NCBI GenBank assembly: GCA_002269645.1
Contig: NIVC01000032.1
Location: 1,391,156 to 1,455,155 of the forward strand
DNA length: 64,000 nt
Origin: Macrostomum lignano
Lineage: Eukaryota
Direction: 5' to 3'
Below are positions 1 to 43,066 of the stretch, one piece after another. Made by a program: the position numbers and the translations under genes. The notes under the pieces are model-generated. The model saw only the letters and a list, made by a program, of their open reading frames with translations. It had not been told where the DNA came from and searched no databases. Position 1 is the first letter of the stretch, and the number at the start of each line of letters is the position of its first letter.

Positions 1-1497
1 GATGATAGATGACAGATTAGAGAGGTGAGAGAAAAGATTAGATAAAAGATAAGAGATGAGATGAGAGGAGAGAGCTGAGAAGAGACACAAACCTTGAGCG
101 GGCTGGATTGCTATAGTGAAGTTTCAAAGGATCAAAGGAATTGTTTCAAAGGCCGGATAGAGAGGTGAAATACATATTTCACCCCTACACTTCTACGGTA
201 AAATTACCCCTGCACTATTAATTTTAACGGTTTTCCTTAATTAACGGTTTTAATTTTAACGACTTCTGCTATCCAATTCTACTGTATTATTACAGTTTTG
301 CACTTAACTCATTACTATCGCAAAAACGAAAAATAAATCCGATAAAATCACTCACAAAAGTAGATAAACTTCGTTAACAGAAAATGTTCAATTTTTTTTC
401 AAACAAAATCTGAAGTAAATTATAACAAAATAATAGAAATATGTCAATGGTTTGGAATGTTTAAAACAATCTTTGAGATAAAATCGGTCTGGAATTTATT
501 GAAACCGGCATAAAAAACTGTGAGCTTGGAAATTATAGTGCTTATTAAATACTAGACAGTATAATTATAGTTTGAAAGATATAAGAAGCATAATACATGA
601 TAATATATACACCACGCAAAAAGTGAGTAAGATAAGCACTGAAAGATGCAGGTTAGCATAATTGCGCATCATATTTTAACAGTAAAACGAGTGAAATAAA
701 TAAATAATTCCGGAAAAAATTACTAATTAACCTGCTAACTATTTCGGCTGAAAGGAGATTCAATGTGACAAATATGAGAATATTTGCAACATATTTTAAT
801 TTGAAGGCACACACAATAAAGGAAAAAGTAATCAAGTTTTGAATTATGAGCAACAATGCTCGATAAAAACCTGCTATGCTTGCACAATAGATTGAGATTG
901 CAAATAGAATTTCTGTATAAATTATTACAGATAGTGCACCTGAATATTGCAAAAATAAATTATTGAATTAATAAATTATTGCTCTAAAAACTGCAGTTTT
1001 TTTAAATACGAAATTATTACAAGCAAAAATTTGAAGAAATGTTTAACTTGCTTAAAGCTGCAATATTCGGTTTATTTTTTGTTAAATTGGCTGAGCTCAA
1101 ATTGCTCATCAATAAGTTTTTAACAATTTTGACTCTCTGATGTGCCAGCGGCCCAGGCTCGATTTCAAGTGCAGTCGCATTAATCTGGGGCTAAATTGGA
1201 ATCTCGGCTTGGCTCTGCTCGTGCAATTAATGTCATTAAGAGCCAACCCCCCAAGGCACAGTGAAGTGTACATGCCTAACGATTAATAAAGTTAAGGCCG
1301 CTGTACACTCCTGTGTGTGTGTGCCTGTGCGTATGACTGCGTACGTATCCGCGCGCTTGTGTGCCTGCTCAGGGGAGTCGGCGGAATGGGGGCAGCAATG
1401 CCTCTCGCCGGTTGTGCGACAATGTCGCTTAAAGTGCGCCCGAGTGCATACAGCTCCCTGCCTCTAATAAAAAATCTCTTCAGTGCATTTTTCAAGC

Positions 1498-1888
1498 GAA
1501 TTGTCTATGGCCCAACCCACTGAGCTGTAACTCAGTTTGAAACCGGCACTGCAGATAAAGTTTGTTTTTTTACTTTAGTCATTGAATTGTCTATGGCCCA
1601 ACCCCACTGAGCTGTCACTCAGTTTGAAACCGGCACTGCAGATAAAGTTTGTTTTTTTACTTTAGTCATTGAATTGTCTATGGCCCAACCCCACTGAGCT
1701 GTCACTCAGTTTGAAACCGGCACTGCAGATAAAGTTTGTTTTTTTACTTTAGTCATTGAATTGTCTATGGCCCAACCCCACTGAGCTGTCACTCAGTTTG
1801 AAACCGGCACTGCAGATAAAGTTTGTTTTTTTACTTTAGTCATTGAATTGTCTATGGCCCAACCCCACTGAGCTGTCACTCAGTTTGA
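1498..1888. repeat. 87-bp tandem array downstream of RUN stop (4 full units + half), copy 1
   Basis: Unit GAATTGTCTATGGCCCAACCCCACTGAGCTGTCACTCAGTTTGAAACCGGCACTGCAGATAAAGTTTGTTTTTTTACTTTAGTCATT starts at 1498, 1584, 1671, 1758 and 1845. Confidence 0.95.
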
Positions 1889-2560
1889 CCCCAGCGAGGC
1901 GGCAGATTTTGGCCTCGGCAGCCGACTGGCAGAAGTCGATCGAAATTTTCTAGCAACAGCACCGGAGCTTTGCCGCTGCTCAGTTTGAGACGCCGGCATA
2001 GGCCAGTAGTTGCGGCGCCGATTGGCATGTTGCCGATGTTGCTGCTTTTGCACCAGCTGGAGCCGGTCAAGAAGACTGCATAGGCGGCTAACGAATTCAA
2101 ACTGGCTGGTGTACCCTGTCTCAGCAGGGCTAGCGGGCGATAGTTACGCTTGAGTAGGTCGGTGTTTGAGCACAGGTGCTTTAGCCAGGCTGACAAGAAA
2201 CCGGCACTGCAGATAAAGTTTGCTTTTTTACTTTAGTCATTAAATTTGAGCACAAATGCTAGGAAAGCAAATCCCATTAATCTCTTAACCATGCAATCTA
2301 ATCAAAACACTTATTGACAAACCACTAGGGTTGTAGCCTCCTCAAGACTCACGACTGAAAGGTTAGGGGTTCGTTTCCCGATCCCACTGAAACAATTTGT
2401 GTCCTTGAGAGCAAGACACTCAACTCTGCATTGCTTGAGTTCACCCAGCTGTAAAATGGGTGCCAGCATTAGCTGGGGGAATTGAGGGTGTGTGTGGCGA
2501 CCCCCCCCCCCAGTCCTTGGACTGAACAGCCTTTAGACTGCGCCACACAGTAGCTGCGGC

Positions 2561-2849
2561 CATACATGCGCAACCTTCAAAAATCGGTCGGCCGTGTGAC
2601 TTAGTTTTTATAAAAATGCGACGTAGTTTTTGGCCAAAAAATGCGACTTACATATAAAAAAACCCAAGCAAAATTAACGCAACTTTGGGTAAACAACAGG
2701 AGTAACTGTCTTATTAAGCCAACATGTCTCGTCAGCTACTTAGTACTACCACTTGAGTATCTGTTCGGGTGGGCATTTTTGCGACTTCTTTGTTTGGCTG
2801 CCAAATCGGTCGGCCGTCGGCCGACTCGGCCGACTGTTATGCATGTATG
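2561..2849. mobile_element. 289-bp MITE (hAT/P-like, 8-bp TSD) in RUN intron 3
   Basis: TIR CATACATGC...GCATGTATG, TSD GCTGCGGC at 2553-2560 and 2850-2857, and subterminal AAATCGGTCGGCCGT repeats. Copy 2 has the empty site with a single GCTGCGGC. Confidence 0.85.
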
Positions 2850-3747
2850 GCTGCGGCTGTGTCGGTTGCGCATCTGCCTATTATGGCAGGTGTAATCAAT
2901 TAACTATGCTTTTCTCCTAAACCTCCCATTCCATGTATCAAAGCTAATTTCCACTCACTTTAAACAGGCAACGACAAAGGCATCGAATCGGCCCTGTTCG
3001 CCATTTGATTCGCTTTTCGAAGCATTTATTTGACGCACAATGGCCGACAGCTTTGGACCAATCGGTACTGCGGAAATTTGGAAATGTAAAATCAATAGAT
3101 TGAGACGCAAAGCAATCGAACCCCCCTCGTTCGTGGGTTCTGAGACTCACCGCAACTGGCACAAGACTCTTCAACCAGCAGACACAGCGGCGAAGCCATC
3201 AGTCTGCTTTTCTTTAACAGCAGATTTCTCTGTTGAACAGTTCTAGCCTTGCTAACATTGCCGCCAAATTGGTTGACAAATTCGGCTGTGGACCAAGCGC
3301 TGGACATTGCTAAACCGTTGCTAACTAGACTGTACAATGAGCGGCACAGTAAACCTACAATAACAGATGAAGATTGACCGTTGCTAGGCAAACTGCAGAT
3401 CGATATCAGCTGTTCGACAGCAGACGCGGCTTGAGCAGACAATCGATTGAGTTGGCGAGTAGGCGATTCGGGAACTGGAAGGCGAGGTGGCGCAGCAGTT
3501 TGAGCCGGTTTGCTGGACACTGGCGAGCCGCAGAATTCCAAAGGCTGGCTGTCCTCGTCGTCGCCATAGAGACCAACTGACTGGGGTATTACCTGGTCTC
3601 GGGAAATATTGTTGAGCACGGCGGGGGGCGTTTGAGCACGGATTGATTGGTTAATTAGTCTTCAGGATGTCAAGTTAGTCTATAGGAAGTTATATCTATC
3701 TTTGGGATTTTTCAGTTAGCCAGTAGGAAATACGAGGAATTTTGTTA

Positions 3748-4228
3748 AAATTAGTCAGTGGGAATCATGGGGAATTTTTGAGAATTAGTCAGTGGGAATC
3801 ATGAGGAACTTTTTCAGAATTAGTCAGTGGGAATCATGGGAAAATTTTTTGGAATTAGTGAAAGGGAATCATGGGGAATTTTTTCAGAATTAGTCAGTGG
3901 GAATCATGAGGAACTTTTTCAGAATTAGTCAGTGGGAAATTGGAATCATGGGGAATTTTTTAGAATTAGTCAGTGGGAATCATGGGGAACTTTTTCAGAA
4001 TTAGTCAGTGGGAATCATGGGGAATTTTTTTAGAATTAGTCAGTGGGAATCATGGGGGACTTTTTTAGAATTAGTCAGTGGGAATCATGGGGAATTTTTG
4101 AGAATTAATCAGTGGGAAATGGGAATCAGGGGGGATTTTTGAGAATTAGTCAGTGGGAAATGGGAATCATGGGGAATTTTTTTATAATTAGTCAGTGGGA
4201 ATCATGGGGAATTTTAATCAGTGGGAAC
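3748..4228. repeat. 35-bp minisatellite (GAATTAGTCAGTGGGAATCATGGGGAACTTTTTTA) in RUN intron 1, copy 1
   Basis: Tandem degenerate units; 35-bp period measured in copy 2 (21281, 21316, 21351). Confidence 0.93.
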
Positions 4229-4911
4229 TATAGAGAATTTTTCTAGTTAATAAGAAGGAATCATCTGGGAATTATTTAGCCCGTGGGAATGATGGAGAAT
4301 GTATGTATGATCAGGGATACTGAAAGCAAGGTTCAGAGCCAGCTCAGAATAACAATTCTCACATGGAAGTCTTGCCCGATCAGGGAGAGCTTGCCGGGGC
4401 ACAGACAAGCACCTGCTAGCAGCATGATCGTCGCAGCTTGAGCAGCGAACTTTCTGACGCCTCCTGCTGCGTCCGCGACTTGACCTGGGAGCAGCAGCAG
4501 CAGCAGCAGCCGGAGCATCTGCACTTAGAAGCAGAGACGGCGCCAATTCCTCCGCTAGGTGGCCTTCTCCGCCTCGAACAGCGACTGCTTGCTGATTGCT
4601 GCTACTAGAGAAGTCAGGCAGATTGTGGAGACGCCAGCCGGCAACTCTTTGGCGTAGAAATGCCCAGATCTGGCAAATTTGAACAGCTGACAGCCGATCG
4701 AAGTAGTTGGTTGGATTCCAGCTTTTGATCGCTACTATTATTATTATCATTATGCCGAACTAATAACGATTGTGGATGTTGAAGAATTCTCAGATTTGAA
4801 GGCCGACGATCGGATTTCAGGCCGCGCCAAGTTGTACGCCTGGAGCAAGGCGGGGCGGCCTGTCTGGTCTGGCAAGGACATCTCGCTCGAGGCTCTGCCC
4901 GAAGTTGATGA

Positions 4912-7587
4912 ACGCCAGAACTACGGCCGCCGCTGAAGGACACACTTCGCCTGGTATACATCGCGTTTTTGCTTCACGGTGTGGGCATTCTGCTACCCTG
5001 GAATCTATTCATCAATGCCAAGGAGTACTTTGAGAACTACAAGCTCAACACGAACATCTCGCGCGAGGCGGACTACAGGCACAATTTTATGAACTACATC
5101 GGCCTCGGGTCTCAGCTGCCCAACATGCTCATGCTGGCTTGCAACGTCTTCTTTCAGCCGTTGACGACCAGCGAAGGACAGGAAAAAACTGGCAGCAAAA
5201 ATGCCGCACGTCGCATTATGCTGGTGATCCTGATCGAAGTTTGCGTCTGCGCCACCACCGTCATCATGGCCTTGGTGGACACGAGCGAATGCCGCGATTG
5301 TTCTTCGATGTCACGCTAATCAGTGTCATTGTGCTCAACTGTTGCACCGGCGTCTATCAGTCCTCGGCGTTCGGCATGGCGGGTGTGCTGCCCATGACCT
5401 ACTCCAGTGCGATCGTACTGGGTAAGGCGTCTATCGTGATGCTTCTCGTGCGTGTCGTAGGAATCAGGGGCGTCGCCACCGGGGGGGGGACATGTCACAG
5501 TAAAAGCTGTAGGGGGGTTATGCCAATGCTTTGTCCCCCTCACCCAACCTTGTGATCCGTTATGAAAATCAATAATTTTGCTTCAGGGTGACAAAATATA
5601 GTGCTGCAGCGCTTAAATGAGTGCCTGCGGCGCTAAAATGAGTGCCTGCGGCGCTAAATGAGTGCCTGCGGGCGCTAAAATGAGTGCCTGCGGCGCTAAA
5701 ATGAGTGCCTGCGGCGCTAAAATGAGTGCCTGCGGCGCTAAAATGAGTGCCTGCGGCGCTAAAATGAGTGCCTACGGCGCTAAAATGAGTGCCTGCGGTG
5801 CTAAAATGAGTGCCTGCGGCGCTAAAATGAGTGCCCGCCGCGCAAAATGAGTGCCTGTGGCGCTAAAATGAGTGCCTGCAGCGCTAAAATGAGTGCCTGC
5901 GGCGCTAAAATGAGTGCCTGCGGCGCTAAAATGAGTGCCTGCGGCGCTAAAATGAGTGCCTGCGGCGCTAAAATGAGTGCCTGCGGCGCTAAAATGAGTG
6001 CCTGTGGCGCTAAAATGAGTGCCTGCGGCGCTAAAATGAGTGCCTGTGGCGCTAAAATGAGTGCCCGCCGCGCCAAAATGAGTGCCTGTGGCGCTAAAAT
6101 GAGTGCCCGCCGCGCCAAAATGAGTGCCTACGGCGCTAAAATGAGTGCCTGTAGCTCTAAAACGAGTGCCTGTGGCGCTAAGATCAGTGCCTGAGGCGCT
6201 AAAACGAGTGCCTGCGGCGCCAAATGAGCGCTGACAACACCGATTCTGAAAATAATGTACATGTACATATAGAATTCTTGGCTCTGTCCCCCCAACCATA
6301 AAATCCATCGCGACCCCTGGTAGGAATCCCGCCCAGACCCCATGGTGACAAGGGAGATATTAGTTTATTAGCTAGTCACAGAACAGCTTTACATAAGTGC
6401 GCTGTTACTACTAATCCAAATCTCCGAGTATCTCTCTGGAGCCGGCACAGATATGGGGTGACGGAGGCCCACAAAATTTAGCAAACTTTTGCTCATCACT
6501 TTCCAGCAAGCTTAAACATGCCACTTAAAATTCACTTGAAGCACTGAAGCATTTTAACGTCGTTTTACGCAACGCAGGTAACAACATCTGCGGAACAGTG
6601 GTTGCCATTGTGAACATTGTTAGTCGGCTGGCATCTTCGCAGAATCTGCAAATGACCGCCGTTGGCTATTTCTCATTCTCTGTCGTACTGCTACTCATCT
6701 GCTTCTCCTCGCTCCTCATATTGCCGAAGCTGCCGTTCTATCGGCACTACCAGCAGCCGCCGTCGCAAACCATTCGTCTGAGAGGACCTGCGACAACTGA
6801 GCAGACGTCTTTCGAATCGGACGACTCAACTGAAACTTAAACGGATGCTGCGATGAGAATCTGGAAACTGTCAGGGCTTGTTGTGCTTTGTGCTGTATCC
6901 GAAGGGACCTGTGGCTGCGTGCTCCAGGTGAGCCAGCCGATTTTTTTAAAGAGTTTCCGATTTCCAAGTCCATTGAATTTGGTAAAACAGCTGTGTCGTC
7001 AAAGTTGAATTCATAACTTTGAACCACAATTTCAGATACTGGCAGAGATACCTGGCTGCCTTCAAAGAGTGCTGGGTTCACTGCCTCAGCGTCTGGTCGA
7101 CATTCTTCTGCACGTGGCCTGCTTTCCAGCCGTTCAATCGGCCATCCGTCCGGTCCAGCTGCTGTCCATAGAGGCCTGGTTCACCGACATCTTCGTGTTC
7201 CTCGGCTTCAACCTGTTCGCCATGCTGGGCAGTCTGGCGTCAAATTTTGTACAATTCCCAAAACCACGCTGGCTGGCACTGGCCGTGTGGATTCGAACCC
7301 TAATCTTCATACCGTTCTTCATCATGTGCAACTGTTTCCCGGACAACCGGGCCCCGGCATTCCCGGTGGTCATCGCTAATGACTACGTGTTCACGGCTGG
7401 CATGGTGTTGTTCGCTTTCACCGGCGGCTACTTCAGCGCCCTCTGCATGATGTACGCGCCAAGGGACGTGAAGAATCCAAAGCACGCGGCATTGGCTGGC
7501 ATGGTGTCGTCATTCTTCCTGGTCTCCGGCATCTTCTGCGGAGTGGCCTTCGGTGGAGTGCTGTTCAATGTGGTGCAGGCGCATTAG
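4912..7587 (+). pseudogene. ENT: Equilibrative nucleoside transporter (SLC29/ENT family), copy 1, with frameshifts
   Basis: Exons about 4912-5421, 6578-6927 and 7036-7587. Relative to copies 2 and 3 there are single-base indels near 5292, 6770-6840, 6898 and 7112. Confidence 0.75.
5465..6319 (+). mobile_element. Non-autonomous hAT-type element with internal 21-bp VNTR, ENT intron 1, copy 1
   Basis: TIR CAGGGGCGTCGC / GCGAC(AC)CCCTG, 8-bp TSD GTAGGAAT, core (GGCGCTAAAATGAGTGCCTGC)n. Confidence 0.88.
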
Positions 7588-8731
7588 GCCGCTTAGAAAA
7601 TTCCAAGTATATCAACTTATGGATGGAGCAAATAGTCAAGCTGCATAAAGCTCGTCACTCTTAATGTCTCGATGTTAAAAAATCTTAAAAATATGTTACT
7701 TTTTCTAGAGCAGCTAGCTGACGTATTTCTATATTACAACTTCTAGTTCCATAAGCTCAGATATAACTTTGTTATAGTGCGTCATAATTTCCGGTGTTGC
7801 AGTCGTTGATTTCTGGCTAGAGACAGATTATAACAATTTAGTAAGACCCCTTTAAATCAAATTGCTATTCGATTAGACGCTCCAGTACTTTCTGGTGACC
7901 CTATTTGTCATTGACGTTGGCTAATTTTATAGCTTCAATTTTTGGCCTCCATCTAGCTGGTTGAGTTTTGTCACGTCAACGAAGAAAACTTGTTTGCAGT
8001 TCAATTTTTGCGTATCTGTCACTCTTTTGGTGTATTTTTTGTTAAATTAAACTATATTTAGGCTGTAAGCTATCGTGATGAAACTATAACTCAGTACTTC
8101 AATACAATTAGTAAATATGTAATATCATGCAATGTCAATTAATTTGAATATGGTGATTAATGCGCAACAGCTAGAATTCATTGCTGCATACTGAGAATTA
8201 TAATACTTTACCAAATGTTTCTGCTGATTCTGGTTGCTGAATTTTGAAAGTCTGAGAGACCCTATAGATCAAACATTAGCTACTTAATAAGTAGTACGAG
8301 TATAAGCATGATTCAATTTTGATTGGTCAGTTGCGTTAAAATATACTGATATTCCTCTATATGTGCTACTCATATTGTTGAAGTAAGTAAGTAAAGCGTT
8401 TTTTATTATTTAATGACTTTCAAATTCAAATTGATATGACAAATATGCATTACCCCTGAGTTTACGTCCGCCAGCATTGCAAGTTAAGCCGAGTTGCTCC
8501 TGGTTAGTGCACACAGTTGAAGTTGCTATGCTTGTGTCCAGGGAGTCTTTCAGCGACCAGGTTTCGGCGTTCGACCACTGCCTCCTAGAACAAAGCCGCC
8601 CTCTGGCGGCTATAAGAATTTGACCCACAGGACCGCTTTTACAGCAGGAAACACGACGCCCATACAAGCTCTAATCAACATTGCGGACGTCAAGAACCAG
8701 ACCGCCGAGGTAGACGAACTGCTGGTGCCAT

Positions 8732-9386
8732 GAGAATCTCTCTCACCCTAAAAATCTCTCTCACCTTGAGAATCTCTCGCCTGGAGAATCTGTCACCTAG
8801 AGAATCTCTTACCGGGAGAATCTGTCACCTGGAGAATCTCTCATCTTGATCATCTCTCGCCTGGAGAATATCTCACCTTGAGAATCTCTCACCTGGAAAA
8901 TCTCTCACCTTGAGAATCTTTCCCTAAAGAGAATCTCTCACCTTGAGAATCGCTCACCTTGAGAATCTCTCAACTTGAGAATCTCTCACCTTGAGAACCT
9001 CTCACCATGATAATCTCTTGCCTGGAGAATCTGTCACCTGGAGAACCTCTCATCTTGTTAATCTCTCGCCTGGAGAATATCTCGCCTGGAGAATCTCTTA
9101 CCTGGAGAATCTCTCACCTGGAGAATCTCTCACCTGGAAAATCTCTCACCTGGAGAATCTCTCACCTGGAGAATCTCTCACCTGGGGAATCTCTCACCTT
9201 GAGAATGTCTCTCACCCTGATAATCTCTTGACTGGAGAATCTGTCACCTGGAGAATCTCTTACCTGGAAAATTTCTTATCTTGATAATCTCTCGCCTGGA
9301 GATTCTCTCACCTAGAGAATCTCTCACCTGAAAAATCTCTCACCTGGAAAATCTCTCACCTGGAGAATCTCTCACCTGGGGAATCT
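8732..9386 (+). repeat. 16-bp minisatellite (GAGAATCTCTCACCT[G/T])n upstream of carboxypeptidase, copy 1
   Basis: Tandem units; also at 26241-26895, 41704-42358 and expanded at 61221-62720. Confidence 0.93.
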
Positions 9387-9736
9387 GTAGAACCTGCCTT
9401 AAAATCCACCATTTTAACGAACTCGCAAGGCTTGTTATGAACAGCTAAACAGCAAAATTTAAAATTTAAAAAATTTTAATTTTTTAGATTCAATTAACAA
9501 AAGCCTATTCTGCGAGAAGAGAAATTATTACAAAGATGAAATTTCTTGTTTAACTAAGAGTTCGCAAAATTGTTTCAATGCCACATTCGACGCTAATTAT
9601 CGAGCAACAGGTGTTTTCGAGTCACATGACCTTAATTATGTAATTCTGTTTTATTTAAATCGATAACCTCTGAAACGGCTAAAAGGTTTAAAATTATTTC
9701 ATCCAGCTCGACACCTGCTGGCCGCCTGTTTCTACA

Positions 9737-15789
<6,053 letters not shown>

Positions 15790-15803
15790 TTGAAGATTTA
15801 CAT

Positions 15804-15809
15804 AATAAA
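15804..15809 (+). terminator. Putative polyadenylation signal of the carboxypeptidase gene
   Basis: AATAAA 14 nt after the TGA, also present in copies 2 and 3. Confidence 0.55.
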
Positions 15810-15853
15810 ATTAACTAACATTACAAAACAGTTTAAAATCTTAACAATGTAAT

Positions 15854-16104
15854 CAGTTGTCGGCAACCTTTTTACTTCAAGGGCCAAATATAAAAGTCTT
15901 GATGATTGCTGCGGGCCGGATGATAGATGACAGATTAGAGAGGTGAGAGAAAAGATTAGATAAAAGATAAGAGATGAGATGAGAGGAGAGAGCTGAGAAG
16001 AGACACAAACCTTGAGCGGGCTGGATTGCTATAGTGAAGTTTCAAAGGATCAAAGGAATTGTTTCAAAGGCCGGATAGAGAGGTGAAATACATATTTCAC
16101 CCCT
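15854..16104. mobile_element. Possible degenerate hAT-like remnant spanning the nominal cassette junction
   Basis: CAGTTGTCGGCAACCTTTTT...AAGGGCCA...GCGGGCCGGA resembles hAT left ends. No matching right TIR or TSD was found. Confidence 0.3.
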
Positions 16105-16534
16105 ACACTTCTACGGTAAAATTACCCCTGCACTATTAATTTTAACGGTTTTCCTTAATTAACGGTTTTAATTTTAACGACTTCTGCTATCCAATTCTAC
16201 TGTATTATTACAGTTTTGCACTTAACTCATTAGTATCGCAAAAACGAAAAATAAATCCGATAAAATCACTCACAAAAGTAGATAAACTTCGTTAACAGAA
16301 AATGTTCAAATTTTTTTCAAACAAAAACCTGAAGTAAATTATAACAAAATAATAGAAATATGTCAATGGTTTGGAATGTTTAAAACAATCTTTGAGATAA
16401 AATCGGTCTGGAATTTATTGAAATCGGCATAAAAAACTGTGAGCTTGGAAATTATAGTGCTTATTAAATACTAGGCAGTATAATTATAGTTTGAAAGATA
16501 TAAGAAGCGTAATACATGATAATATATACACCAC

Positions 16535-17389
16535 TTTTGGTTTTGTCTCGCATAGAGACGCCTAACCGCAGTCACTTCTGTGAAACTTGTCTCTGCCTGG
16601 CTGAAAGCTTGTAATGAGTGAGTAGGCTGGGTTGGAGGGTAATAGTGGATCGGGAGGGGCTGTGGGTAGCTGTATAGGAAGGCAGGCCTATACCTGTACC
16701 AAGGTGCTCTGACGGTATCCCTCAGGCGCCCTCTGAGCGTACAGCCAGCGACCCTATTAAAGCAGGAGTGTGCCAGAACCAGGACTGAGTCTGAGCAGGA
16801 CGAGACCGTTGGCACGATCATAATAGAAATGGCGGGTTGGCGAAGCAAAGGGTGAAATAGTCCCGGCGATTAGCCCTCCTGCCGCTTCAAAGATAAGAGA
16901 GTGTCTGTTGGCAAGAGTACCCGGGGTTTAGTAGGGGGGGAGGCTCCTTCGGGTTGCCACGGCCGTGGGGGCGGTCTTATGACCGGTGTTTTGGCCTTTC
17001 TAACCCAGGAGAAGGCACGGGCTCCCCTGAATGGTTCTCTCTTCCCCCTCTAGCCTCGGGGAGGTTTATGATTTGTACCCGGGGGTGGTGGGCGGTCGGC
17101 CCCAGCATGGTAGCCACGGCTCTAGGCCTTCGGGCCACCCCTAATAGGCATGGGTGTCTATCTAACCTGGTTTTTGGGCACGGGCTTCCTGACTGGTATG
17201 TCGTTCCGCTGTCACTGTCCCCCGGGGAGGTTTGGTTTTTTTGATACTGCCCTGTACAGTCCTCTATAGTCTAACTTGGCTTTTAGTGTACTTTAGTACA
17301 CTCCCTAATAGGAAACTCATTTAGTCTAGTGGCGTAAGAGCCTATTTCAATGGCTGAGGCGCCGGAGCACTTATCTTAGTTAGTTAGTT
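16535..17389 (+). mobile_element. 855-bp retroposon-like insertion unique to copy 2
   Basis: 13-bp TSD ATATATACACCAC (16522-16534 and 17390-17402), (TTAG)3 tail at the right end, and an empty site in copies 1, 3 and 4. Orientation is inferred from the tail. No RT homology recognised. Confidence 0.8.
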
Positions 17390-18282
17390 ATATATACACC
17401 ACGCAAAAAGTGAGTTAGATAAGCAGTGAAATAAATAAATAATTCCGGAAAAAATTACTAATTAACCTGCTAATTATTTCGGTTGAAAGGAGATTCAATG
17501 TGACAACAGCTTGCCGGTAAATAAGAAGATAGGGTAAGAGTAAAACACGACAACAGATATGAGAATGTTTGCAACATATTTTAATTTGAAGGCACACGAA
17601 ATAAAGGAAAAAGTAATCAAGTTTTTAATTATGAGCAACAATGCTCGATAAAAACCTGCTATGCTTGCACAATAGATTTGAGATTGCAAATAGAATTTCT
17701 GTATATATTATTACAGATAGTGCACCTGAATATTGCAAAAATAAATTATTGAATTAATAAATTATTGCTCTAAAAACTGCAGTTTTTTTAAATAAGAAAT
17801 TATTACAAGCAAAGATTTGAAGAAATGTTTAACTTGCTTAAAGCAGCAATTTTTGGTTTATTTTTTTGTTAAATTGGCTGAGCTCAAATTGCTCATCAAT
17901 AAGTTTTTACCAATTTTGACTCTCTGATGTGCCAGCGGCCCAGGCTCGATTCCAAGTGCAGTCACATTAATTTGGGGCTAAATTGGAATCTCGGCTTGGC
18001 TCTGCTCATGCAATTAATGTCATTAAGAGCCAACCCCCCAAGGCGCAGTGAAGTGTACATGCCCAACGATTAATAAAGTTAAGGCCGCTGTACACTCCTG
18101 TGTGTGTGCCTGTGCGTATGACTGCGTACGTATCCGCGCGCTTGTGTGCCTGCTCAGGGGAGTCGGCGGAATGGGGGCAGCAATGCCTCTCGCCGGTTGT
18201 GCGACAATGTCGCTTAAAGTGCGCCCGAGTGCATACAGCTCCCTGCCTCTGATAAAAAATCTCTTCAGTGCATTTTTCAAGC

Positions 18283-18845
18283 GAATTGTCTATGGCCCAA
18301 CCCCACTGAGCTGTAACTCAGTTTGAAACCGGCACTGCAGATAAAGTTGTTTTTTTACTTTAGTCATTGAATTGTCTATGGCCCAACCCCACTGAGCTGT
18401 CACTCAGTTTGAAACCGGCACTGCAGATAAAGTTTGTTTTTTTACTTTAGTCATTGAATTGTCTTTGGCCCAACCCCACTGAGCTGTCACTCAGTTTGAA
18501 ACCGGCACTGCAGATAAAGTTTGTTTTTTTACTTTAGTCATTGAATTGTCTATGGCCCAACCCCACTGAGCTGTAACTCAGTTTGAAACCGGCACTGCAG
18601 ATAAAGTTGTTTTTTTACTTTAGTCATTGAATTGTCTATGGCCCAACCCCACTGAGCTGTCACTCAGTTTGAAACCGGCACTGCAGATAAAGTTTGTTTT
18701 TTTACTTTAGTCATTGAATTGTCTATGGCCCAACCCCACTGAGCTGTAACTCAGTTTGAAACCGGCACTGCAGATAAAGTTGTTTTTTTACTTTAGTCAT
18801 TGAATTGTCTATGGCCCAACCCCACTGAGCTGTCACTCAGTTTGA
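18283..18845. repeat. 87-bp tandem array, copy 2 (6 units + half)
   Basis: Unit starts at 18283, 18369, 18456, 18543, 18629, 18716 and 18802. Confidence 0.95.
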
Positions 18846-21800
18846 CCCCAGCGAGGCGGCAGATTTTGGCCTCGGCAGCCGACTGGCAGAAGTCGATCGA
18901 AATTTTCTAGCAACAGCACCGGAGCTTTGCCGCTGCTCAGTTTGAGACGCCGGCATAGGCCAGTAGTTGCGGCGCCGATTGGCATGTTGCCGATGTTGCT
19001 GCTTTTGCATCAGCTGGAGCCGGTCAAGAAGACTGCATAGGCGAGCTAACGAATTCAAACTGGCTGGTGTGCCCTGTCTCAGCAGGGCTAGCGGGCGATA
19101 GTTACGCTTGAGTAGGTCGGTGTTTGAGCACAGGTGCTTTAGCCAGGCTGACAAGAAACCGGCACTGCAGATAAAGTTTGCTTTTTTACTTTAGTCATTA
19201 AATTTGAGCACAAATGCTAGGAAAGCAAATTCCATTAATCTCTTAACCATGCAATCTAATCAAAACACTTATTGACAATCCACTAGGGTTGTAGCCTCCT
19301 CAAGACTCACGACTGAAAGGTTAGGGGTTCGATTCCCGATCCCACTGGAACAATTTGTGTCCTTGAGAGCAAGACACTCAACTCTGCATTGCTTGAGTTC
19401 ACCCAGCTGTAAAATGGGTGCCAGCATTAGCTGGGGTAATTGAGGGTGTGTGGCGACCCCCCCTCCCAGTCCTCGGACTGCACAGCCGTACGCAGCCTTC
19501 AGACTGCGCCGCGCAAATAGCTGCGGCTGAGCTGTCGGTTGCACATCTGCCTATTATGACAGGTGTAATCTATTAACTATCAAATCACTCACTTCAAACA
19601 GGCAACGACAAAGGCATCGAATCGGCCCTGTTCGCCATTTGATTCGCTTTTCGAAGCATTTATTTGACGCACAATGGCCGACAGCTTTAGACCAATCGGT
19701 ACTGCGGAAATTTGGAAATGTTAAATCAATAGATTGAGACGCAAAGCAATCGAACCCCCCTCGTTCGTGGGTTCTGAGACTCACCGCAACTTGCACAAGA
19801 CTCTTCAACCAGCAGACACAGCGGCGAAGCCATCAGTCTGCTTTTCTTTAACAGCAGACTTCTCTGTTGAACAGTTCTAGCCTTGCTAACATTGCCGCCA
19901 AATTGGTTGACAAATTCGGCTGTGGACCAAGCGCTGGACATTGCTAAACCGTTGCTAACTAAACTGTACAATGAGCGGCACAGTAAACCTACAATAACAG
20001 ATGAAGATTGACCGTTGCTAGGCAAACTGCAGATCGATATCAGCTGTTCGACAGCAGACGCGGCTTGAGCAGACAATCGATTGAGTTGGCGAGTAGGCGA
20101 TTCGGGAACTGGAAGGCGAGACGGTGCAGCAGTTTGAGCCGGTTTGCTGGACACAGGCGAGCCGCAAAATTCCAACGGCGGGCTGTCCTCGTCGTCGCCA
20201 TAGAGACCAACTGACTGGGGTATTACCTGGTCTCGGGAAATATTGTTGAGCACGGGGGAGTTTGAGCACGGATTGATTGGTTAATTAGTCTTCAGGATGT
20301 CAAGTTAGTCTATAGGAAGCTATATCTATCTTTGGGATTTTTCAGTTAGCCAGTAGGAAATACGGGGAATTTTGTTAGAATTAGTCAGTGGGAATCATGG
20401 GGAATTTTTTAGAATTAGTTAGTGGGAATCATGGGGAATGTTTTTAGAATTAGTCAGTGGGAATCATAGGGAATTTTTTAGAATTAGTTAGTGGGAATCA
20501 TGGGAAAATTTTTTTAGAATTAGTCAAAGGGAATCATAGGGAATTTTTTAGAATTAGTTAGTGGGAATCATGGGAAAATTTTTTTAGAATTATTCAAAGG
20601 GAATCATGGGGAATTTATTAGAATTGGTCGAAGGGAATCATGGGGAATTTTTGAGAATTAGTCAGTGAGAATCATGGGAATTTTGTTTAAATTAGTCAGT
20701 GGGAATCATGGGGAATTTTTTAGAATTAGTCAGTGGGAATCATGAGGAACTTTTTTAGAATTAGTCAATGGGAATCATGGGGAATTTTTTAGAATTAGTC
20801 AGTGGGAATCATGAGGAACTTTTTTAGAATTAGTCAGTGGGAATCATGGGGAATTTTTTAGAATTAGTCAGTGGGAATCATGAGGGACTTTTTAAAAATA
20901 GTCAGTGGGAATTCATGGGAACTTTTTTAGAACTAGCCAACGGGAATCATGGGGAACTTTTTTAGAACTAGCCAACGGGAATCATGGGGAACTTTTTTAG
21001 AACTAGCCAATGGGAATCATGGGGAACTTTTTTAGAACTAGCCAACGGGAATCATGGGGAACTTTTTTAGAAATAGCCAATGGGAATCATGGGGAACTTT
21101 TTTAGAACTAGTCAACGGGAATCATGGGGAACTTTTTTAGAATTAGTCAACGGGAATCATGGGGAACTTTTTTAGAATTAGTCAGTGGGAATCATGGGGA
21201 ACTTTTTTAGAATTAGTCAGTGGGAATCATGGGTAACTTTTTTAGAACTAGTCAACGGGAATCATGGGGAACTTTTTTAGAATTAGTCAGTGGGAATCAT
21301 GGGGAACTTTTTTAGAATTAGTCAGTGGGAATCATGGGGAACTTTTTTAGAATTAGTCAGTGGGAATCATGGGGAACTTTTTTAGAACTAGCCAACGGGA
21401 ATCATGGGGAACTTTTTTAGAATTAGTCAGTGGGAATCATGGGGAACTTTTTTAGAATTAGTCAGTGGGAATCATGGGGAACTTTTTTAGAACTAGTCAA
21501 CGGAAATCATGGGGAACTTTTTTAGAATTAGTCAGTGGGAATCAGGGGGAACTTTTTTTAAAATTAGCCAATGGGAATCATGGGGGACTTTTTTAGAATT
21601 AGTCAGAGAGAATCAGGGGGAATTTTTGAGAATTAGTCAGTGGGAAATTGGAATCATGGGGAACTTTTTTAGAATTAGTCAATGGGAATCATGGGGAATG
21701 TTTTTATAATTAGTCAGTGGGAATCATGGGGAATTTTAATCAGTGGGAACTATAGAGAATTTTTCTAGTTAATAAGAAGGAATCATCTGGGAATTATTTA

Positions 21801-22481
21801 GCCCGTGGGAATGATGGAGAATGTATGTATGATCAGGGATACCGAAAGCAAGTTTCAGAGCCAGCTCAGAATAACAATTCTCACATGGAAGTCTTGCCCG
21901 ATCAGGGAGAGCTTGGCCGGTGGCACAGACAAGCACCTGCTAGCAGCATGATCGTCGCAGCTTGAGCAGCGAACTTTCTGACGCCTCCTGCTGCGTCCGC
22001 GACTTGACCTGGGAGCAGCAGCAGCAGCAGCAGCCGGAGCATCTGCACTAGAAGCAGAGACGGCGCCAATTCCTCCGCTAGGTGGCCTTCTCCGCCTCGA
22101 ACAGCGACTGCTTGGATTGCTGCTACTAGAGAAGTCAGGCAGATTGGTGGAGACGCCAGCCGGCAACTCTTGGCGTAGAAATGCCAGATCTGGCAAATTT
22201 GAACAGCTGACAGCCGATCGAAGTAGTTGGTTGGATTCCAGCTTTTGATCGCTACTATTATTATTATCATTATGCCGAACTAATAACGATTGTGGATGTT
22301 GAAGAATTCTCAGATTTGAAGGCCGACGATCGGATTTCAGGCCGCGCCAAGTTGTACGCCTGGAGCAAGGCGGGGCGGCCTGTCTGGTCTGGCAAGGACA
22401 TCTCGCTCGAGGCTCTGCCCGAAGTTGATGAACGCCAGAACTACGGCCGCCGCTGAAGGACACACTTCGCCTGGTATACAT
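18837..22481 (-). CDS. RUN-domain protein (RUSC1/2-like RUN domain), copy 2, up to 491 aa
   Basis: Exons 22481-21885, 20226-19785, 19701-19593 and 19164-18837 join in frame through GT-AG introns (donors GTGAGA, GTGAGT, GTGAGT). The spliced product has AVEQLI..LCRSLYSLVSNGL..LVEES..GRFDAFVVACLNAGFLSAWLKHL..LLKRNYRPLALL..LCSLLDRLQ, the block pattern of RUN domains. The true start is uncertain. Confidence 0.85.
20378..21750. repeat. 35-bp minisatellite, copy 2 (expanded, about 1.37 kb)
   Basis: Same unit. Confidence 0.95.
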
Positions 22482-25096
22482 CGCGTTTTTGCTTCACGGT
22501 GTGGGCATTCTGCTACCCTGGAATCTATTCATCAATGCCAAGGAGTACTTTGAGAACTACAAGCTCAACACGAACATCTCGCGCGAGGCGGACTACAGGC
22601 ACAATTTTATGAACTACATCGGCCTCGGGTCTCAGCTGCCCAACATGCTCATGCTGGCTTGCAACGTCTTCTTTCAGCCGTTGACGACCAGCGAAGGACA
22701 GGAAAAAACTGGCAGCAAAAATGCCGCACGTCGCATTATGCTGGTGATCCTGATCGAAGTTTGCGTCTGCGCCACCACCGTCATCATGGCCTTGGTGGAC
22801 ACGAGCGAATGCCCGCGATTGTTCTTCGATGTCACGCTAATCAGTGTCATTGTGCTCAACTGTTGCACCGGCGTCTATCAGTCCTCGGCGTTCGGCATGG
22901 CGGGTGTGCTGCCCATGACCTACTCCAGTGCGATCGTACTGGGTAAGGCGTCTATCGTGATGCTTCTCGTGCGTGTCGTAGGAATCAGGGGCGTCGCCAC
23001 CGGGGGGGGGACATGTCACAGTAAAAGCTGTAGGGGGGTTATGCCAATGCTTTGTCCCCCTCACCCAACCTTGTGATCCGTTATGAAAATCAATAATTTT
23101 GCTTCAGGGTGACAAAATATAGTGCCTGCAGCGCTTAAATGAGTGCCTGCGGCGCTAAAATGAGTGCCTGCGGCGCTAAAATGAGTGCCTGCGGCGCTAA
23201 AATGAGTGCCTGCGGCGCTAAAATGAGTGCCTGCGGCGCTAAAATGAGTGCCTGCGGCGCTAAAATGAGTGCCTACGGCGCTAAAATGAGTGCCTGCGGT
23301 GCTAAAATGAGTGCCTGCGGCGCTAAAATGAGTGCCCGCCGCGCCAAAATGAGTGCCTGTGGCGCTAAAATGAGTGCCTGCAGCGCTAAAATGAGTGCCT
23401 GCGGCGCTAAAATGAGTGCCTGCGGCGCTAAAATGAGTGCCTGCGGCGCTAAAATGAGTGCCTGCGGCGCTAAAATGAGTGCCTGCGGCGCTAAAATGAG
23501 TGCCTGTGGCGCTAAAATGAGTGCCTGCGGCGCTAAAATGAGTGCCTGTGGCGCTAAAATGAGTGCCCGCCGCGCCAAAATGAGTGCCTGTGGCGCTAAA
23601 ATGAGTGCCCGCCGCGCCAAAATGAGTGCCTACGGCGCTAAAATGAGTGCCTGTAGCTCTAAAACGAGTGCCTGTGGCGCTAAGATCAGTGCCTGAGGCG
23701 CTAAAACGAGTGCCTGCGGCGCCAAATGAGCGCTGACAACACCGATTCTGAAAATAATGTACATGTACATATAGAATTCTTGGCTCTGTCCCCCCAACCA
23801 TAAAATCCATCGCGACACCCCTGGTAGGAATCCCGCCCAGACCCCATGGTGACAAGGGAGATATTAGTTTATTAGCTAGTCACAGAACAGCTTTACATAA
23901 GTGCGCTGTTACTACTAATCCAAATCTCCGAGTATCTCTCTGGAGCCGGCACAGATATGGGGTGACGGAGGCCCACAAAATTTAGCAAACTTTTGCTCAT
24001 CACTTTCCCAGCAAGCTTAAACATGCCACTTAAAATTCACTTGAAGCACTGAAGCATTTTAACGTCGTTTTACGCAACGCAGGTAACAACATCTGCGGAA
24101 CAGTGGTTGCCATTGTGAACATTGTTAGTCGGCTGGCATCTTCGCAGAATCTGCAAATGACCGCCGTTGGCTATTTCTCATTCTCTGTCGTACTGCTACT
24201 CATCTGCTTCTCCTCGCTCCTCATATTGCCGAAGCTGCCGTTCTATCGGCACTACCAGCAGCCGCCGTCGCAACCGCATTCGTCTGAGAGGACCTGCGAC
24301 ACTGAGCAGACGTCTTTCGAATCGGACGACTCAACTGAAACTGTAAACGGATGCTGCGATGAGAATCTGGAAACTGTCAGGGCTTGTTGTGCTTTGTGCT
24401 GTATCCGCAAGGGACCTGTGGCTGCGTGCTCCAGGTGAGCCAGCCGATTTTTTTAAAGAGTTTCCGATTTCCAAGTCCATTGAATTTTGGTAAAACAGCT
24501 GTGTCGTCAAAGTTGAATTCATAACTTTGAACCACAATTTCAGATACTGGCAGAGATACCTGGCTGCCTTCAAAGAGTGCTGGGTTCACTGCCTCAGCGT
24601 CTGGTCGACATTCTTCTGCACGCTGGCCTGCTTTCCAGCCGTTCAATCGGCCATCCGTCCGGTCCAGCTGCTGTCCATAGAGGCCTGGTTCACCGACATC
24701 TTCGTGTTCCTCGGCTTCAACCTGTTCGCCATGCTGGGCAGTCTGGCGTCAAATTTTGTACAATTCCCAAAACCACGCTGGCTGGCACTGGCCGTGTGGA
24801 TTCGAACCCTAATCTTCATACCGTTCTTCATCATGTGCAACTGTTTCCCGGACAACCGGGCCCCGGCATTCCCGGTGGTCATCGCTAATGACTACGTGTT
24901 CACGGCTGGCATGGTGTTGTTCGCTTTCACCGGCGGCTACTTCAGCGCCCTCTGCATGATGTACGCGCCAAGGGACGTGAAGAATCCAAAGCACGCGGCA
25001 TTGGCTGGCATGGTGTCGTCATTCTTCCTGGTCTCCGGCATCTTCTGCGGAGTGGCCTTCGGTGGAGTGCTGTTCAATGTGGTGCAGGCGCATTAG
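22432..25096 (+). CDS. ENT: Equilibrative nucleoside transporter (SLC29/ENT family), copy 2; start codon not identified
   Basis: Exons 22432-22942, 24083-24434 and 24544-25096 join in frame (471 codons before the stop). ENT motifs: KDTLRLVYIAFLLHGVGILLPWNLFINAKEYF, GNNICG, TLACFPAV, FNLFAMLG, RTLIFIPFFIMCN, FAFTGGYFSALCMMYAP, AGMVSSFFLVSGIFCG. Confidence 0.92.
22986..23823 (+). mobile_element. hAT-type element with 21-bp VNTR, copy 2
   Basis: 12-bp TIR with one mismatch; TSD GTAGGAAT at 22978-22985 and 23824-23831. Confidence 0.9.
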
Positions 25097-27245
25097 GCCG
25101 CTTAGAAAATTCCAAGTATATCAACTTATGGATGGAGCAAATAGTCAAGCTGCATAAAGCTCGTCACTCTTAATGTCTCGATGTTAAAAAATCTTAAAAA
25201 TATGTTACTTTTTCTAGAGCAGCTAGCTGACGTATTTCTATATTACAACTTCTAGTTCCATAAGCTCAGATATAACTTTGTTATAGTGCGTCATAATTTC
25301 CGGTGTTGCAGTCGTTGATTTCTGGCTAGAGACAGATTATAACAATTTAGTAAGACCCCTTTAAATCAAATTGCTATTCGATTAGACGCTCCAGTACTTT
25401 CTGGTGACCCTATTTGTCATTGACGTTGGCTAATTTTATAGCTTCAATTTTTGGCCTCCATCTAGCTGGTTGAGTTTTGTCACGTCAACGAAGAAAACTT
25501 GTTTGCAGTTCAATTTTTGCGTATCTGTCACTCTTTTGGTGTATTTTTTGTTAAATTAAACTATATTTAGGCTGTAAGCTATCGTGATGAAACTATAACT
25601 CAGTACTTCAATACAATTAGTAAATATGTAATATCATGCAATGTCAATTAATTTGAATATGGTGATTAATGCGCAACAGCTAGAATTCATTGCTGCATAC
25701 TGAGAATTATAATACTTTACCAAATGTTTCTGCTGATTCTGGTTGCTGAATTTTGAAAGTCTGAGAGACCCTATAGATCAAACATTAGCTACTTAATAAG
25801 TAGTACGAGTATAAGCATGATTCAATTTTGATTGGTCAGTTGCGTTAAAATATACTGATATTCCTCTATATGTGCTACTCATATTGTTGAAGTAAGTAAG
25901 TAAAGCGTTTTTTATTATTTAATGACTTTCAAATTCAAATTGATATGACAAATATGCATTACCCCTGAGTTTACGTCCGCCAGCATTGCAAGTTAAGCCG
26001 AGTTGCTCCTGGTTAGTGCACACAGTTGAAGTTGCTATGCTTGTGTCCAGGGAGTCTTTCAGCGACCAGGTTTCGGCGTTCGACCACTGCCTCCTAGAAC
26101 AAAGCCGCCCTCTGGCGGCTATAAGAATTTGACCCACAGGACCGCTTTTACAGCAGGAAACACGACGCCCATACAAGCTCTAATCAACATTGCGGACGTC
26201 AAGAACCAGACCGCCGAGGTAGACGAACTGCTGGTGCCATGAGAATCTCTCTCACCCTAAAAATCTCTCTCACCTTGAGAATCTCTCGCCTGGAGAATCT
26301 GTCACCTAGAGAATCTCTTACCGGGAGAATCTGTCACCTGGAGAATCTCTCATCTTGATCATCTCTCGCCTGGAGAATATCTCACCTTGAGAATCTCTCA
26401 CCTGGAAAATCTCTCACCTTGAGAATCTTTCCCTAAAGAGAATCTCTCACCTTGAGAATCGCTCACCTTGAGAATCTCTCAACTTGAGAATCTCTCACCT
26501 TGAGAACCTCTCACCATGATAATCTCTTGCCTGGAGAATCTGTCACCTGGAGAACCTCTCATCTTGTTAATCTCTCGCCTGGAGAATATCTCGCCTGGAG
26601 AATCTCTTACCTGGAGAATCTCTCACCTGGAGAATCTCTCACCTGGAAAATCTCTCACCTGGAGAATCTCTCACCTGGAGAATCTCTCACCTGGGGAATC
26701 TCTCACCTTGAGAATGTCTCTCACCCTGATAATCTCTTGACTGGAGAATCTGTCACCTGGAGAATCTCTTACCTGGAAAATTTCTTATCTTGATAATCTC
26801 TCGCCTGGAGATTCTCTCACCTAGAGAATCTCTCACCTGAAAAATCTCTCACCTGGAAAATCTCTCACCTGGAGAATCTCTCACCTGGGGAATCTGTAGA
26901 ACCTGCCTTAAAATCCACCATTTTAACGAACTCGCAAGGCTTGTTATGAACAGCTAAACAGCAAAATTTAAAATTTAAAAAATTTTAATTTTTTAGATTC
27001 AATTAACAAAAGCCTATTCTGCGAGAAGAGAAATTATTACAAAGATGAAATTTCTTGTTTAACTAAGAGTTCGCAAAATTGTTTCAATGCCACATTCGAC
27101 GCTAATTATCGAGCAACAGGTGTTTTCGAGTCACATGACCTTAATTATGTAATTCTGTTTTATTTAAATCGATAACCTCTGAAACGGCTAAAAGGTTTAA
27201 AATTATTTCATCCAGCTCGACACCTGCTGGCCGCCTGTTTCTACA

Positions 27246-27415
27246 ATGAGTGTCAAAGTGAACTCAGCTTTTGCTTCGGCGCTGCTGGCCTTTGGTCTGC
27301 TGCTGCCCTGTCAACTGGGCCTGCCCACCACGAGAAATCAGGGGTGAGTGCTGGATTCTTCGGGACAGGTATGTGAGCTCATAGACAGACTGATAGACAC
27401 ACAGACTGACAGACT

Positions 27416-27466
<51 letters not shown>

Positions 27467-27506
27467 GGACACACAGACAAAAAGACAGACAGACAGACAG
27501 ACAGAC

Positions 27507-27595
<89 letters not shown>

Positions 27596-27596
27596 A

Positions 27597-27633
<37 letters not shown>

Positions 27634-27654
27634 CTAAGACAGACAGACAGTAAA

Positions 27655-27695
<41 letters not shown>

Positions 27696-27714
27696 CTAAG
27701 ACAGACACTAAGAA

Positions 27715-27755
<41 letters not shown>

Positions 27756-35098: not shown

Positions 35099-35396
35099 GA
35101 ATTGTCTATGGCCCAACCCCACTAAGCTGTCACTCAGTTTGAAACCGGCACTGCAGATAATTTTTTTTACTTTAGTCATTGAATTGTCTTTGGCCCAACC
35201 CCACTGAGCTGTCACTCAGTTTGAAACCGGCACTGCAGATAAAGTTTGTTTTTTTTTTAGTCATTGAATTGTCTATGGCCCAACCCCACTGAGCTGTCAC
35301 TCAGTTTGAAACCGGCACTGCAGATAAAGTTTGTTTTTTTACTTTAGTCATTGAATTGTCTTTGGCCCAACCCCACTGAGCTGTCACTCAGTTTGA
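35099..35396. repeat. 87-bp tandem array, copy 3 (3 units + half)
   Basis: Unit starts at 35099, 35181, 35266 and 35353. Confidence 0.93.

Positions 35397-42878: not shown

Positions 42879-42929
<51 letters not shown>

Positions 42930-42969: not shown

Positions 42970-43066
<97 letters not shown>

Follow-up and report, generated by a model that had tools for sequence, protein, structure and literature searches.

Four tandem cassettes, each with a RUN gene and an 87-bp array

The stretch of DNA analysed here, referred to below as the window, covers 64,000 nucleotides of Macrostomum lignano contig NIVC01000032.1 (positions 1,391,156 to 1,455,155). Repeat landmarks recur along it at periods of about 15.9, 17.7 and 19.2 kb, and the 64 kb therefore consist of four tandem cassettes of 16-19 kb each. 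Every cassette carries, on the minus strand, a gene for a RUN-domain protein, and just past the terminal coding exon of this gene (exon 4) lies an array of 87-bp units. We show that each unit is made of the two ends of that exon, one bearing its 3' splice site and the other its stop codon, with the interior missing; the origin of the array from a collapsed copy of the exon is well supported. The cassettes are delimited as follows.

21-15938: cassette 1
15939-33632: cassette 2
33633-52848: cassette 3
52849-64000: cassette 4, to the end of the window

Tandem Repeats Finder places the array of cassette 1 at 1498-1888 (4.5 copies, 99% matches, score 768) and homologous arrays at 18283-18845 (6.5 copies), 35099-35396 (3.5 copies) and 54316-54703 (4.5 copies). 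With a period of 87 bp, head-to-tail units and 94-99% matches over the four arrays, the element is a minisatellite. Unit-by-unit splitting gives 4, 6, 3 and 4 collapsed units beside one full copy in cassettes 1 to 4, respectively, in agreement with the varying unit number noticed in an earlier reading of the letters alone (the sequence-only reading). In what follows, A denotes the part of the unit that holds the splice site, B the part around the stop codon, and core the exon interior that lies between them in the authentic gene.

3151-3592, minus strand: RUN exon 2 of cassette 1, start at 3592 by paralogue homology and model P0005 (start at 3580 in model P0001)
2959-3067, minus strand: RUN exon 3 of cassette 1
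2207-2958, minus strand: RUN intron 3 of cassette 1, with donor aa/gtgagt at 2958
1880-2206, minus strand: RUN exon 4 (terminal coding exon) of cassette 1, frameshifted
2197-2241, minus strand: authentic A, the last 35 nt of intron 3 (branch-point-like ACTAAA, then ttatctgcag) and the first 10 nt of exon 4 (tgccggtttc)
1889-2196, minus strand: exon core missing from the units, 308 nt plus TC, coding for the RUN domain's C-terminal third and for the tail
1845-1888, minus strand: authentic B, comprising the final codons, the surroundings of the stop, 35 nt of 3' flank and the hairpin ACTGAGT/GCTCAGT
1882-1880 and 1878-1876, minus strand: stops in authentic B of cassette 1, the canonical TGA and the shifted-frame TGA, respectively
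1498-1844, minus strand: array of cassette 1, acceptor and 10 exon nt fused to stop and 3' flank, four units (1844-1758, 1757-1671, 1670-1584, 1583-1498)
18837-19164, minus strand: RUN exon 4 of cassette 2, intact, ending SLGSN-TGA and encoding P0003 exactly
18283-18801, minus strand: array of cassette 2, six units, 86-bp and 87-bp variants mostly alternating, with higher-order periods of 173 and 260
35388-35715, minus strand: RUN exon 4 of cassette 3, intact, encoding P0001 exactly
35099-35352, minus strand: array of cassette 3, three units of 87, 85 and 82 bp
54695-55022, minus strand: RUN exon 4 of cassette 4, intact, encoding P0001 exactly
54316-54659, minus strand: array of cassette 4, four units of 87, 87, 88 and 82 bp, the distal 82-bp variant in common with cassette 3

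Each unit joins the two ends of the terminal exon

A unit consists of 35 nt of intron 3, the first 10 bases of exon 4 and 42 nt that begin just 5' of the stop codon. Its A part reads aatgactaaagtaaaaaaacaaactttatctgcag/tgccggtttc (35 nt of intron and 10 nt of exon) and its B part aaactgagtgacagctcagtggggttgggccatagacaattc. Compared with the sequence from which the arrays had been masked, the unit matches two separate and unique sites, the B half at 1845-1888 (44/44) and the A half at 2197-2241 (44/45), as was proposed when the unit was first described as the last RUN exon with its interior removed. Matching to two sites in this way is not seen for any other minisatellite in the cassette. On the sense strand the layout of each cassette is A-[core]-B-(A-B)n, with the array downstream of exon 4; the parts had been recognized correctly in the sequence-only reading, but their order (A-B-...-A-[core]-B) is mirrored.

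The sole mismatch in A is a G versus A at position -16 (authentic aaaaaaGcaaac, array aaaaaaAcaaac), and it is fixed in 17/17 units across the four cassettes. The authentic A has an upstream AG at -15, which the array copies lack, and the sequence around the splice site itself, ttatctgcag/tgccggtttc, is unchanged in all 17. In cassettes 2-4 the units lack a segment of 311 nt, in cassette 1 one of 310 nt; neither length is divisible by 3. Within the unit A is joined to B at a TC microhomology (ccggttTC/aaactg in the array versus ctggggTC/aaactg in the gene), which was also noted before and is seen directly in the sequence, and one unit is joined to the next by gacaattC/aatgac, to be compared with the authentic caaattT/aatgac, beside a common AATT. 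Each unit keeps 10 nt of the exon start and 7 nt of the exon end including the stop, while 311 nt are gone and the frame is shifted; the units do not retain the coding body and are not, in this respect, a tandemly duplicated exon.

The gene and the ancestry of its acceptor

The RUN protein of the window is 100% identical, over the aligned part, to M. lignano UniRef entries. Splice junctions of the RUN gene reproduce the annotated proteins P0001, P0003 and P0004 exactly, and all three use the exon-4 acceptor. The Pfam RUN profile (PF02759) matches the cassette 1 model with E = 1e-11 and the intact copies with E = 2e-13 (45.6-51 bits, gathering cut-off 22), the intact copies covering profile positions 2-124 of 131. 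The closest relatives of solved structure are Iporin/RUSC2 (PDB 6if2) and RUSC1/NESCA (PDB 4giw); this alignment spans the junction of exon 3 and exon 4, that is, of A and core, and extends 46 residues into exon 4. The likeness to the RUSC subfamily, which combines RUN with SH3, is limited to the RUN domain: a domain scan of P0001 found RUN alone, with neither SH3 nor any other domain, and P0004, which was run against solved structures only, matched nothing other than RUN-domain chains there (P0005 was left out of the domain scans). In contrast to the RUSC proteins, that of the window is short, and tandem cassettes carry several near-identical copies of it.

An exhaustive HMMER search recovered one further relative, a M. 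lignano paralogue family with 36% identity (representative P0006; member P0007, BOX15_Mlig004720g1). The paralogue has an intron at the same codon and in the same phase, between the second and third base of the Asn codon in ACL-N, with GCC TGC CTC AA/gtgagc ... gtgcag/C TCC AAG in the paralogue and GCC TGT TTA AA/gtgagt ... ctgcag/T GCC GGT in the window. The acceptor copied in the array is thus a genuine ancestral 3' splice site, as the sequence-only reading had maintained, and the gene is older than the array. Moreover, homology to the P0006 family extends to residue 227 of P0001, well within the core and beyond the point at which cassette 1 is frameshifted. Since the paralogue shares the intron and the homology runs into the core, the exon came first and gave rise to the array. 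The paralogue locus has repeats of its own, unrelated to the 87-bp unit, namely a long (GTCT)n tract in the homologous intron (L001 9090-9660) and a minisatellite of about 43 bp in the 3' flank, about 120 nt past the stop (L001 10400-10700).

In exon 4 of cassette 1 one T is deleted between 2087 and 2086 (ttagc-cgcc versus ttagctcgcc in cassettes 2-4), and the shifted frame ends GQTE-stop at 1878-1876, whereas in cassettes 2-4 the frame ends SLGSN-stop at aaacTGA. The latter frame is the ancestral one, because with it the Pfam match lengthens from profile position 108 to 124 and paralogue homology reaches residue 227. Either the gene copy was pseudogenised by this deletion or the assembly is wrong here. 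In a comparison of cassettes 2 and 3, the 861-nt RUN coding sequence differs at 12 sites, 4 of them amino-acid-changing; in aligned sites, the differences amount to 26/425 in intron 3, 10/430 in exon 2 and 0/322 in exon 4. The divergence of coding sequence and intron, in what are small numbers, suggests some purifying selection.

Two further features lie in intron 3. A MITE-like (miniature inverted-repeat transposable element) insert with inverted repeats at 2552-2574 and 2836-2858 (23 nt, 83% complementary) is present in cassettes 1, 3 and 4 (2552-2858 in cassette 1), and about 330 bp are absent at that place in cassette 2. At about 2325-2480 a stretch resembles a tRNA-derived short interspersed element (SINE; ggttcgtttcccgatccc ... 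cacccagctgtaaaatgggtgcc). Neither this stretch nor the 87-bp unit gave an ARAGORN tRNA or an Rfam match in cassette 1 and the start of cassette 2, which were scanned. In intron 1 a 35-bp minisatellite (3749-4241; 20346-21763 in cassette 2) varies between the cassettes, with about 7, 8, 13 and 40 copies; its units, read on the plus strand, end in a pyrimidine tract and AG (ctttttcag), and it lies upstream of the transporter gene described below.

Turnover of the array between cassettes

Nine of the 17 units are exactly 87 bp long, the other eight measuring 82 (two units), 85, 86 or 88 bp. Several of the length variants are single-base changes in runs of A, and variation within the arrays concentrates in the A-rich tract. 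Cassettes 3 and 4 have flanks that are 99.7% identical, yet they differ in unit number (3 versus 4); a C>T change in B is common to distal units of both. Variable copy number and interspersed variant units across paralogous cassettes make the array a variable-number tandem repeat (VNTR) at the level of the cassettes. Because all four cassettes carry the array and its diagnostic G-to-A change, the array predates the divergence of cassette 2. Judging by the unit counts, the 82-bp variant and the 86/87-bp higher-order repeat, it has kept changing since then. Simple or tandem repeats make up 15% of the M. lignano genome (PMC5730564), and given that figure such turnover is ordinary behaviour.

Surroundings of the array

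Besides the RUN gene, each cassette holds two genes on the plus strand, one for a zinc carboxypeptidase (Peptidase_M14) and one for an equilibrative nucleoside transporter, as well as about 10 minisatellites. Cassettes 1, 3 and 4 are near-identical, and cassette 2 has diverged by 1-6% in the RUN half; cassette-wide blastn was noisy and was used for rough identity figures of 96-99%, not for a fine map of divergence. The differences in cassette length come mainly from minisatellite copy number, as in a 27-bp array in a carboxypeptidase intron with 49, 57 and 199 copies between cassettes. In every cassette two pairs of arrays are nested as reverse complements of each other, a 21-mer (5600-6228 versus 13022-13412) and a 16-mer (8757-9386 versus 10559-11096), symmetric about a central (AGAC)n tract of about 100 repeats (9874-10286).

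Transcription, splicing and gene models

One further feature bears on whether the array is transcribed.

1071-1076, minus strand: first canonical AATAAA past the stop on the sense strand, about 420 nt downstream of the array (candidate poly(A) signal)

An AATAAA is found at the same offset in the other cassettes (17862, 34679, 53895), and every unit of the array carries AGUAAA. Going by these signals, the array may or may not lie within the 3' untranslated region (UTR).

If exon 3 were spliced to an array acceptor, the conceptual translation would end ...CLNAGFKLSDSSVGLGHRQFND and a stop, which confirms the truncated product that had been predicted earlier. Its end aligns at about residue 141 of the 205-residue Iporin chain, so that about the last third of the RUN fold would be lost and the product would probably not be a working domain. 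The RUN protein models that share exons 2-3 all end at the authentic exon. Searched together among 5.8 billion predicted proteins, the truncated terminus and the putative read-through module considered below had no match at E <= 10.

The RUN gene of the cassettes is matched by WormBase-derived UniRef entries only and by no GenBank (PAA) protein, whereas the paralogue has one, a weak and indirect hint that expression of the cassette gene is low or that a repeat filter removed it. Two other models call for comment. P0005 (A0A1I8I309) could be taken as evidence that the array is an intron, because it splices over the whole array from a weak donor, ctggg/gtcaaa (1886-1889), 8 nt 5' of the RUN stop. 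The intron is 3.2 kb long and lands in antisense carboxypeptidase sequence of the neighbouring cassette (15478-15603, minus strand), and the 739-aa model has no start codon and is pieced together, over more than one cassette, from translated minisatellites and from minus-strand stretches of the region that holds the transporter and carboxypeptidase genes of the plus strand; it was treated as what is probably a prediction artefact in repeated DNA. P0002, which omits exon 3 and enters exon 4 at an internal acceptor, in the shifted frame, was treated likewise.

Origin of the array

The array is probably a neutral VNTR with silent pseudo-acceptors, born from the RUN terminal exon by duplication and internal deletion. 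The mutational route, the neutrality and the silence of the acceptors are what we infer from the anatomy described above. A replication error would have duplicated 398 bp in direct tandem, a segment that begins 35 nt 5' of the exon-4 acceptor and ends 35 nt 3' of the stop, with the join of the duplication beside the AATT microhomology. The copy would then have lost its 311-nt interior at the TC microhomology, which lies 3 nt upstream of the 7-bp hairpin. Duplication and deletion could have been two steps, or a single event with two template switches; microhomologies of 2-5 nt, serial template switches, duplications with deletions and stimulation by palindromes are features of fork stalling and template switching and of microhomology-mediated break-induced replication (FoSTeS/MMBIR; PMC2583991). 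An RNA-mediated (processed) origin of the deletion is excluded, because the deleted piece lacks GT...AG ends and the unit retains intron and flanking sequence. The 87-bp A-B unit would next have been amplified and reshuffled by unequal exchange or slippage, starting before the 16-19 kb cassette multiplied and continuing separately in each cassette. The resulting array would have no selected function, while leaving 3-6 complete copies of a 3' splice site (ACTAAA, a short pyrimidine tract and AG) downstream of the authentic one. These would be silent or used at the level of noise, given that the authentic acceptor, upstream, would be transcribed first, and any product made through them would be without the last third of the RUN domain.

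Several observations weigh against this account. The identity of exon 4 between cassettes 2 and 3 (18837-19164 versus 35388-35715) points to homogenisation near the array, which may represent local gene conversion. The two types of substitution seen in the hairpin, a G>T in the loop and a C>U that gives a G-U pair, both keep the stem, which with two events is not significant. All 17 units hold ttatctgcag/tgccggtttcaaactgagt intact, for which selection is one possible reading; homogenisation of the array explains it equally well. Finally, 38.8% of M. lignano genes are trans-spliced (PMC5730564), and acceptors without a donor in a 3' UTR might attract the spliced leader.

Alternative explanations

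The sequence-only reading saw in the array a ladder of functional acceptors. In this scenario the array is part of the pre-mRNA, its 3' splice sites are used and the number of units tunes the amount of full-length RUN mRNA; joined in cis to the exon-3 donor, the sites would yield a RUN protein with the ...CLNAGFKLSDSSVGLGHRQFND end, and use in trans, with the spliced leader, would cut the 3' UTR. A complete and invariant module of the authentic 3' splice site in each of the 17 units fits this scenario, as does the loss, in the array copies, of the AG found at -15 in the authentic one. With the first canonical AAUAAA 420 nt past the array, the latter could lie inside the terminal exon. The frequency of trans-splicing in M. 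lignano is also in its favour, as is the constitutive use, in IFI6 and CBS, of the two donor copies that lie nearest (PMC1557585). However, the truncated terminus is found in no annotated or predicted protein, the product without about the last third of the RUN fold would probably have no working domain, copy number drifts freely among near-identical cassettes, and the authentic acceptor lies upstream and would be transcribed first. Use of the array acceptors is thus unlikely and, as a functional reading, unsupported; nothing shows a role of the array in regulating the RUN gene. A ladder of working sites tunable by copy number, in which the number of units determines how often exon 3 or the spliced leader is spliced to an array acceptor, is very unlikely. 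If it were true, full-length RUN mRNA would be throttled or leader-capped fragments of the 3' UTR would be released, and the array would be a natural test of choice among identical, complete 3' splice-site modules.

Alternatively, the AGUAAA, the A run and the hairpin repeated in each unit could act as polyadenylation or RNA-stability elements, the number of units affecting the choice of the 3' end. Every unit does present AGUAAA followed by an A-rich run, about 50 nt past the copy of the stop region, together with a moderately stable hairpin. AGUAAA is a weak variant of the hexamer, though, and the authentic intron 3 contains it too, evidently without causing termination there; moreover, the variation within the arrays falls exactly in the A-rich tract. 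We regard a role at the 3' end as distinctly unlikely.

A third possibility is that the A-B satellite came first, and that the 311-nt core was inserted into it or that the gene captured a unit as splice site and stop. Insertion into one unit would likewise leave the core between an A and a B. This order of events is nevertheless largely refuted, and highly improbable: the reading frame and the RUN homology run without a break from exon 3 through the 10 bases of the A part into the core, the paralogue has the same intron position and phase with no such array, the unit is absent from the rest of the 64-kb window and from the 20-kb paralogue locus, and the A-B junction has 0 exact matches in a metagenome contig collection. 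Exact look-ups of P0001 and P0002, made for other genomic copies, returned no record.

It is hardly credible that the array, or its differences in copy number, arose from long-read assembly errors in repeats. Single-base changes in A runs, to which several of the length variants belong, are typical of such errors, and the frameshift of cassette 1 could be one too. However, the array is present in four independent copies of the cassette, cassettes 3 and 4 share the distal 82-bp unit as well as the C>T in B of distal units, and both protein variants, that of cassette 2 (P0003) and that of cassettes 3 and 4 (P0001), are M. lignano UniRef entries annotated independently of the window.

The hairpin that covers the stop is real, as the sequence-only reading had it: the stem ACUGAGU/GCUCAGU has 7 bp and, folded within 32 nt of sequence, reaches -10.3 kcal/mol (z = -2.3). 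The entire unit, in contrast, folds no better than shuffled sequence (z = -1.2), and the hairpin is modest and inherited from the end of the authentic exon. In cassettes 2-4 the frame of the authentic stop stays open through a perfect 87-bp unit, up to the same SN-UGA; this part of the earlier description stands, but it fails in cassette 1, which is entirely out of frame and ends GQTE-stop. The further proposal that ribosomes pass the UGA, aided by the hairpin that overlaps it, and add 28-aa modules (VTAQWGWAIDNSMTKVKKQTLSAVPVSN) to the RUN protein does not survive the unit lengths. Eight of the 17 are not multiples of 3, so a 29-codon module is not conserved, and complete modules in frame past the authentic stop number 0 in cassette 2, whose first unit of 86 bp loses the frame at once, 1 in cassette 3 and 2 in cassette 4. 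Read-through is thus close to excluded. Each module also closes with its own UGA and would need a separate read-through, the hairpin encloses the stop instead of following it, one open frame in an 87-nt unit has a chance expectation of about 9% (our own arithmetic, (61/64)^28 x 1/3) and the module is absent from the protein database searched; nothing points to a coding role for the array.

Comparison with known systems

Copy-number-variable minisatellites 3' of a stop codon have an example in SLC6A3/DAT1, with its VNTR of 40-bp repeats in the 3' UTR. The RUN array resembles it in being such a repeat beyond the stop codon of a coding gene. It differs in that the DAT1 unit does not derive from the gene's own splice site and stop, and membership of the UTR is putative here.

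As regards the route of origin, the array shares with FoSTeS/MMBIR rearrangements (PMC2583991) joins at microhomologies of 2-4 nt, a deletion that breaks into the duplicated segment, and a small palindrome beside one of the joins. In contrast to those rearrangements, the scale is one of tens to hundreds of bases and not of kb to Mb, the product has been amplified into an array, and the mechanism is read from the junctions alone. The array is an unusually clean record of the birth of a minisatellite, with the progenitor, both joins and their microhomologies still legible beside it and four paralogous copies to display how it changed later. If its splice sites are silent, as we expect, it is a neat but ordinary by-product of a genome rich in tandem repeats.

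The sequence-only reading knew of no feature type that names such an array. It is, however, a minisatellite (VNTR) with pseudo splice sites, a kind of element already described for donors (PMC1557585). In minisatellites that repeat a donor, the first monomer spans an exon-intron boundary, as in F7 IVS7 (37 bp), intron 2 of IFI6 (6-16), CBS IVS13, LMNB2 and intron 4 of PDGF; only the authentic upstream donor is used in F7, LMNB2 and PDGF, whereas IFI6 and CBS splice from the two nearest pseudo-sites as well (PMC1557585). Pseudo-sites of this type are expected to work in an assay yet to be silent or seldom used in vivo. The RUN array is like the F7/IFI6/CBS type in that it is a VNTR with exact copies of an authentic splice site beside the real one, variable in copy number between the cassettes, and in that the most upstream, authentic site is expected to dominate. 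The splice site is repeated in every monomer (17/17 units, 1 base off the real acceptor over 45 nt). The array is nonetheless not placed in the donor group, because a contiguous monomer running into the intron is missing: the progenitor is interrupted by the 308/309-nt core, and the monomer is a chimera of both exon ends minus 311 nt, where the donor monomers are contiguous. In addition, it is the 3' splice site that is copied and not the 5' site, and the array, with what are pseudo-sites at the level of sequence, follows the stop of a terminal exon instead of lying within the following intron. We see it as an acceptor-side counterpart of the F7/IFI6 donor minisatellites, which have served studies of splice-site choice. 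Since M. lignano can be made transgenic (PMC5730564), the array could in turn serve as a natural minigene for competition between 3' splice sites, trans-splicing included.

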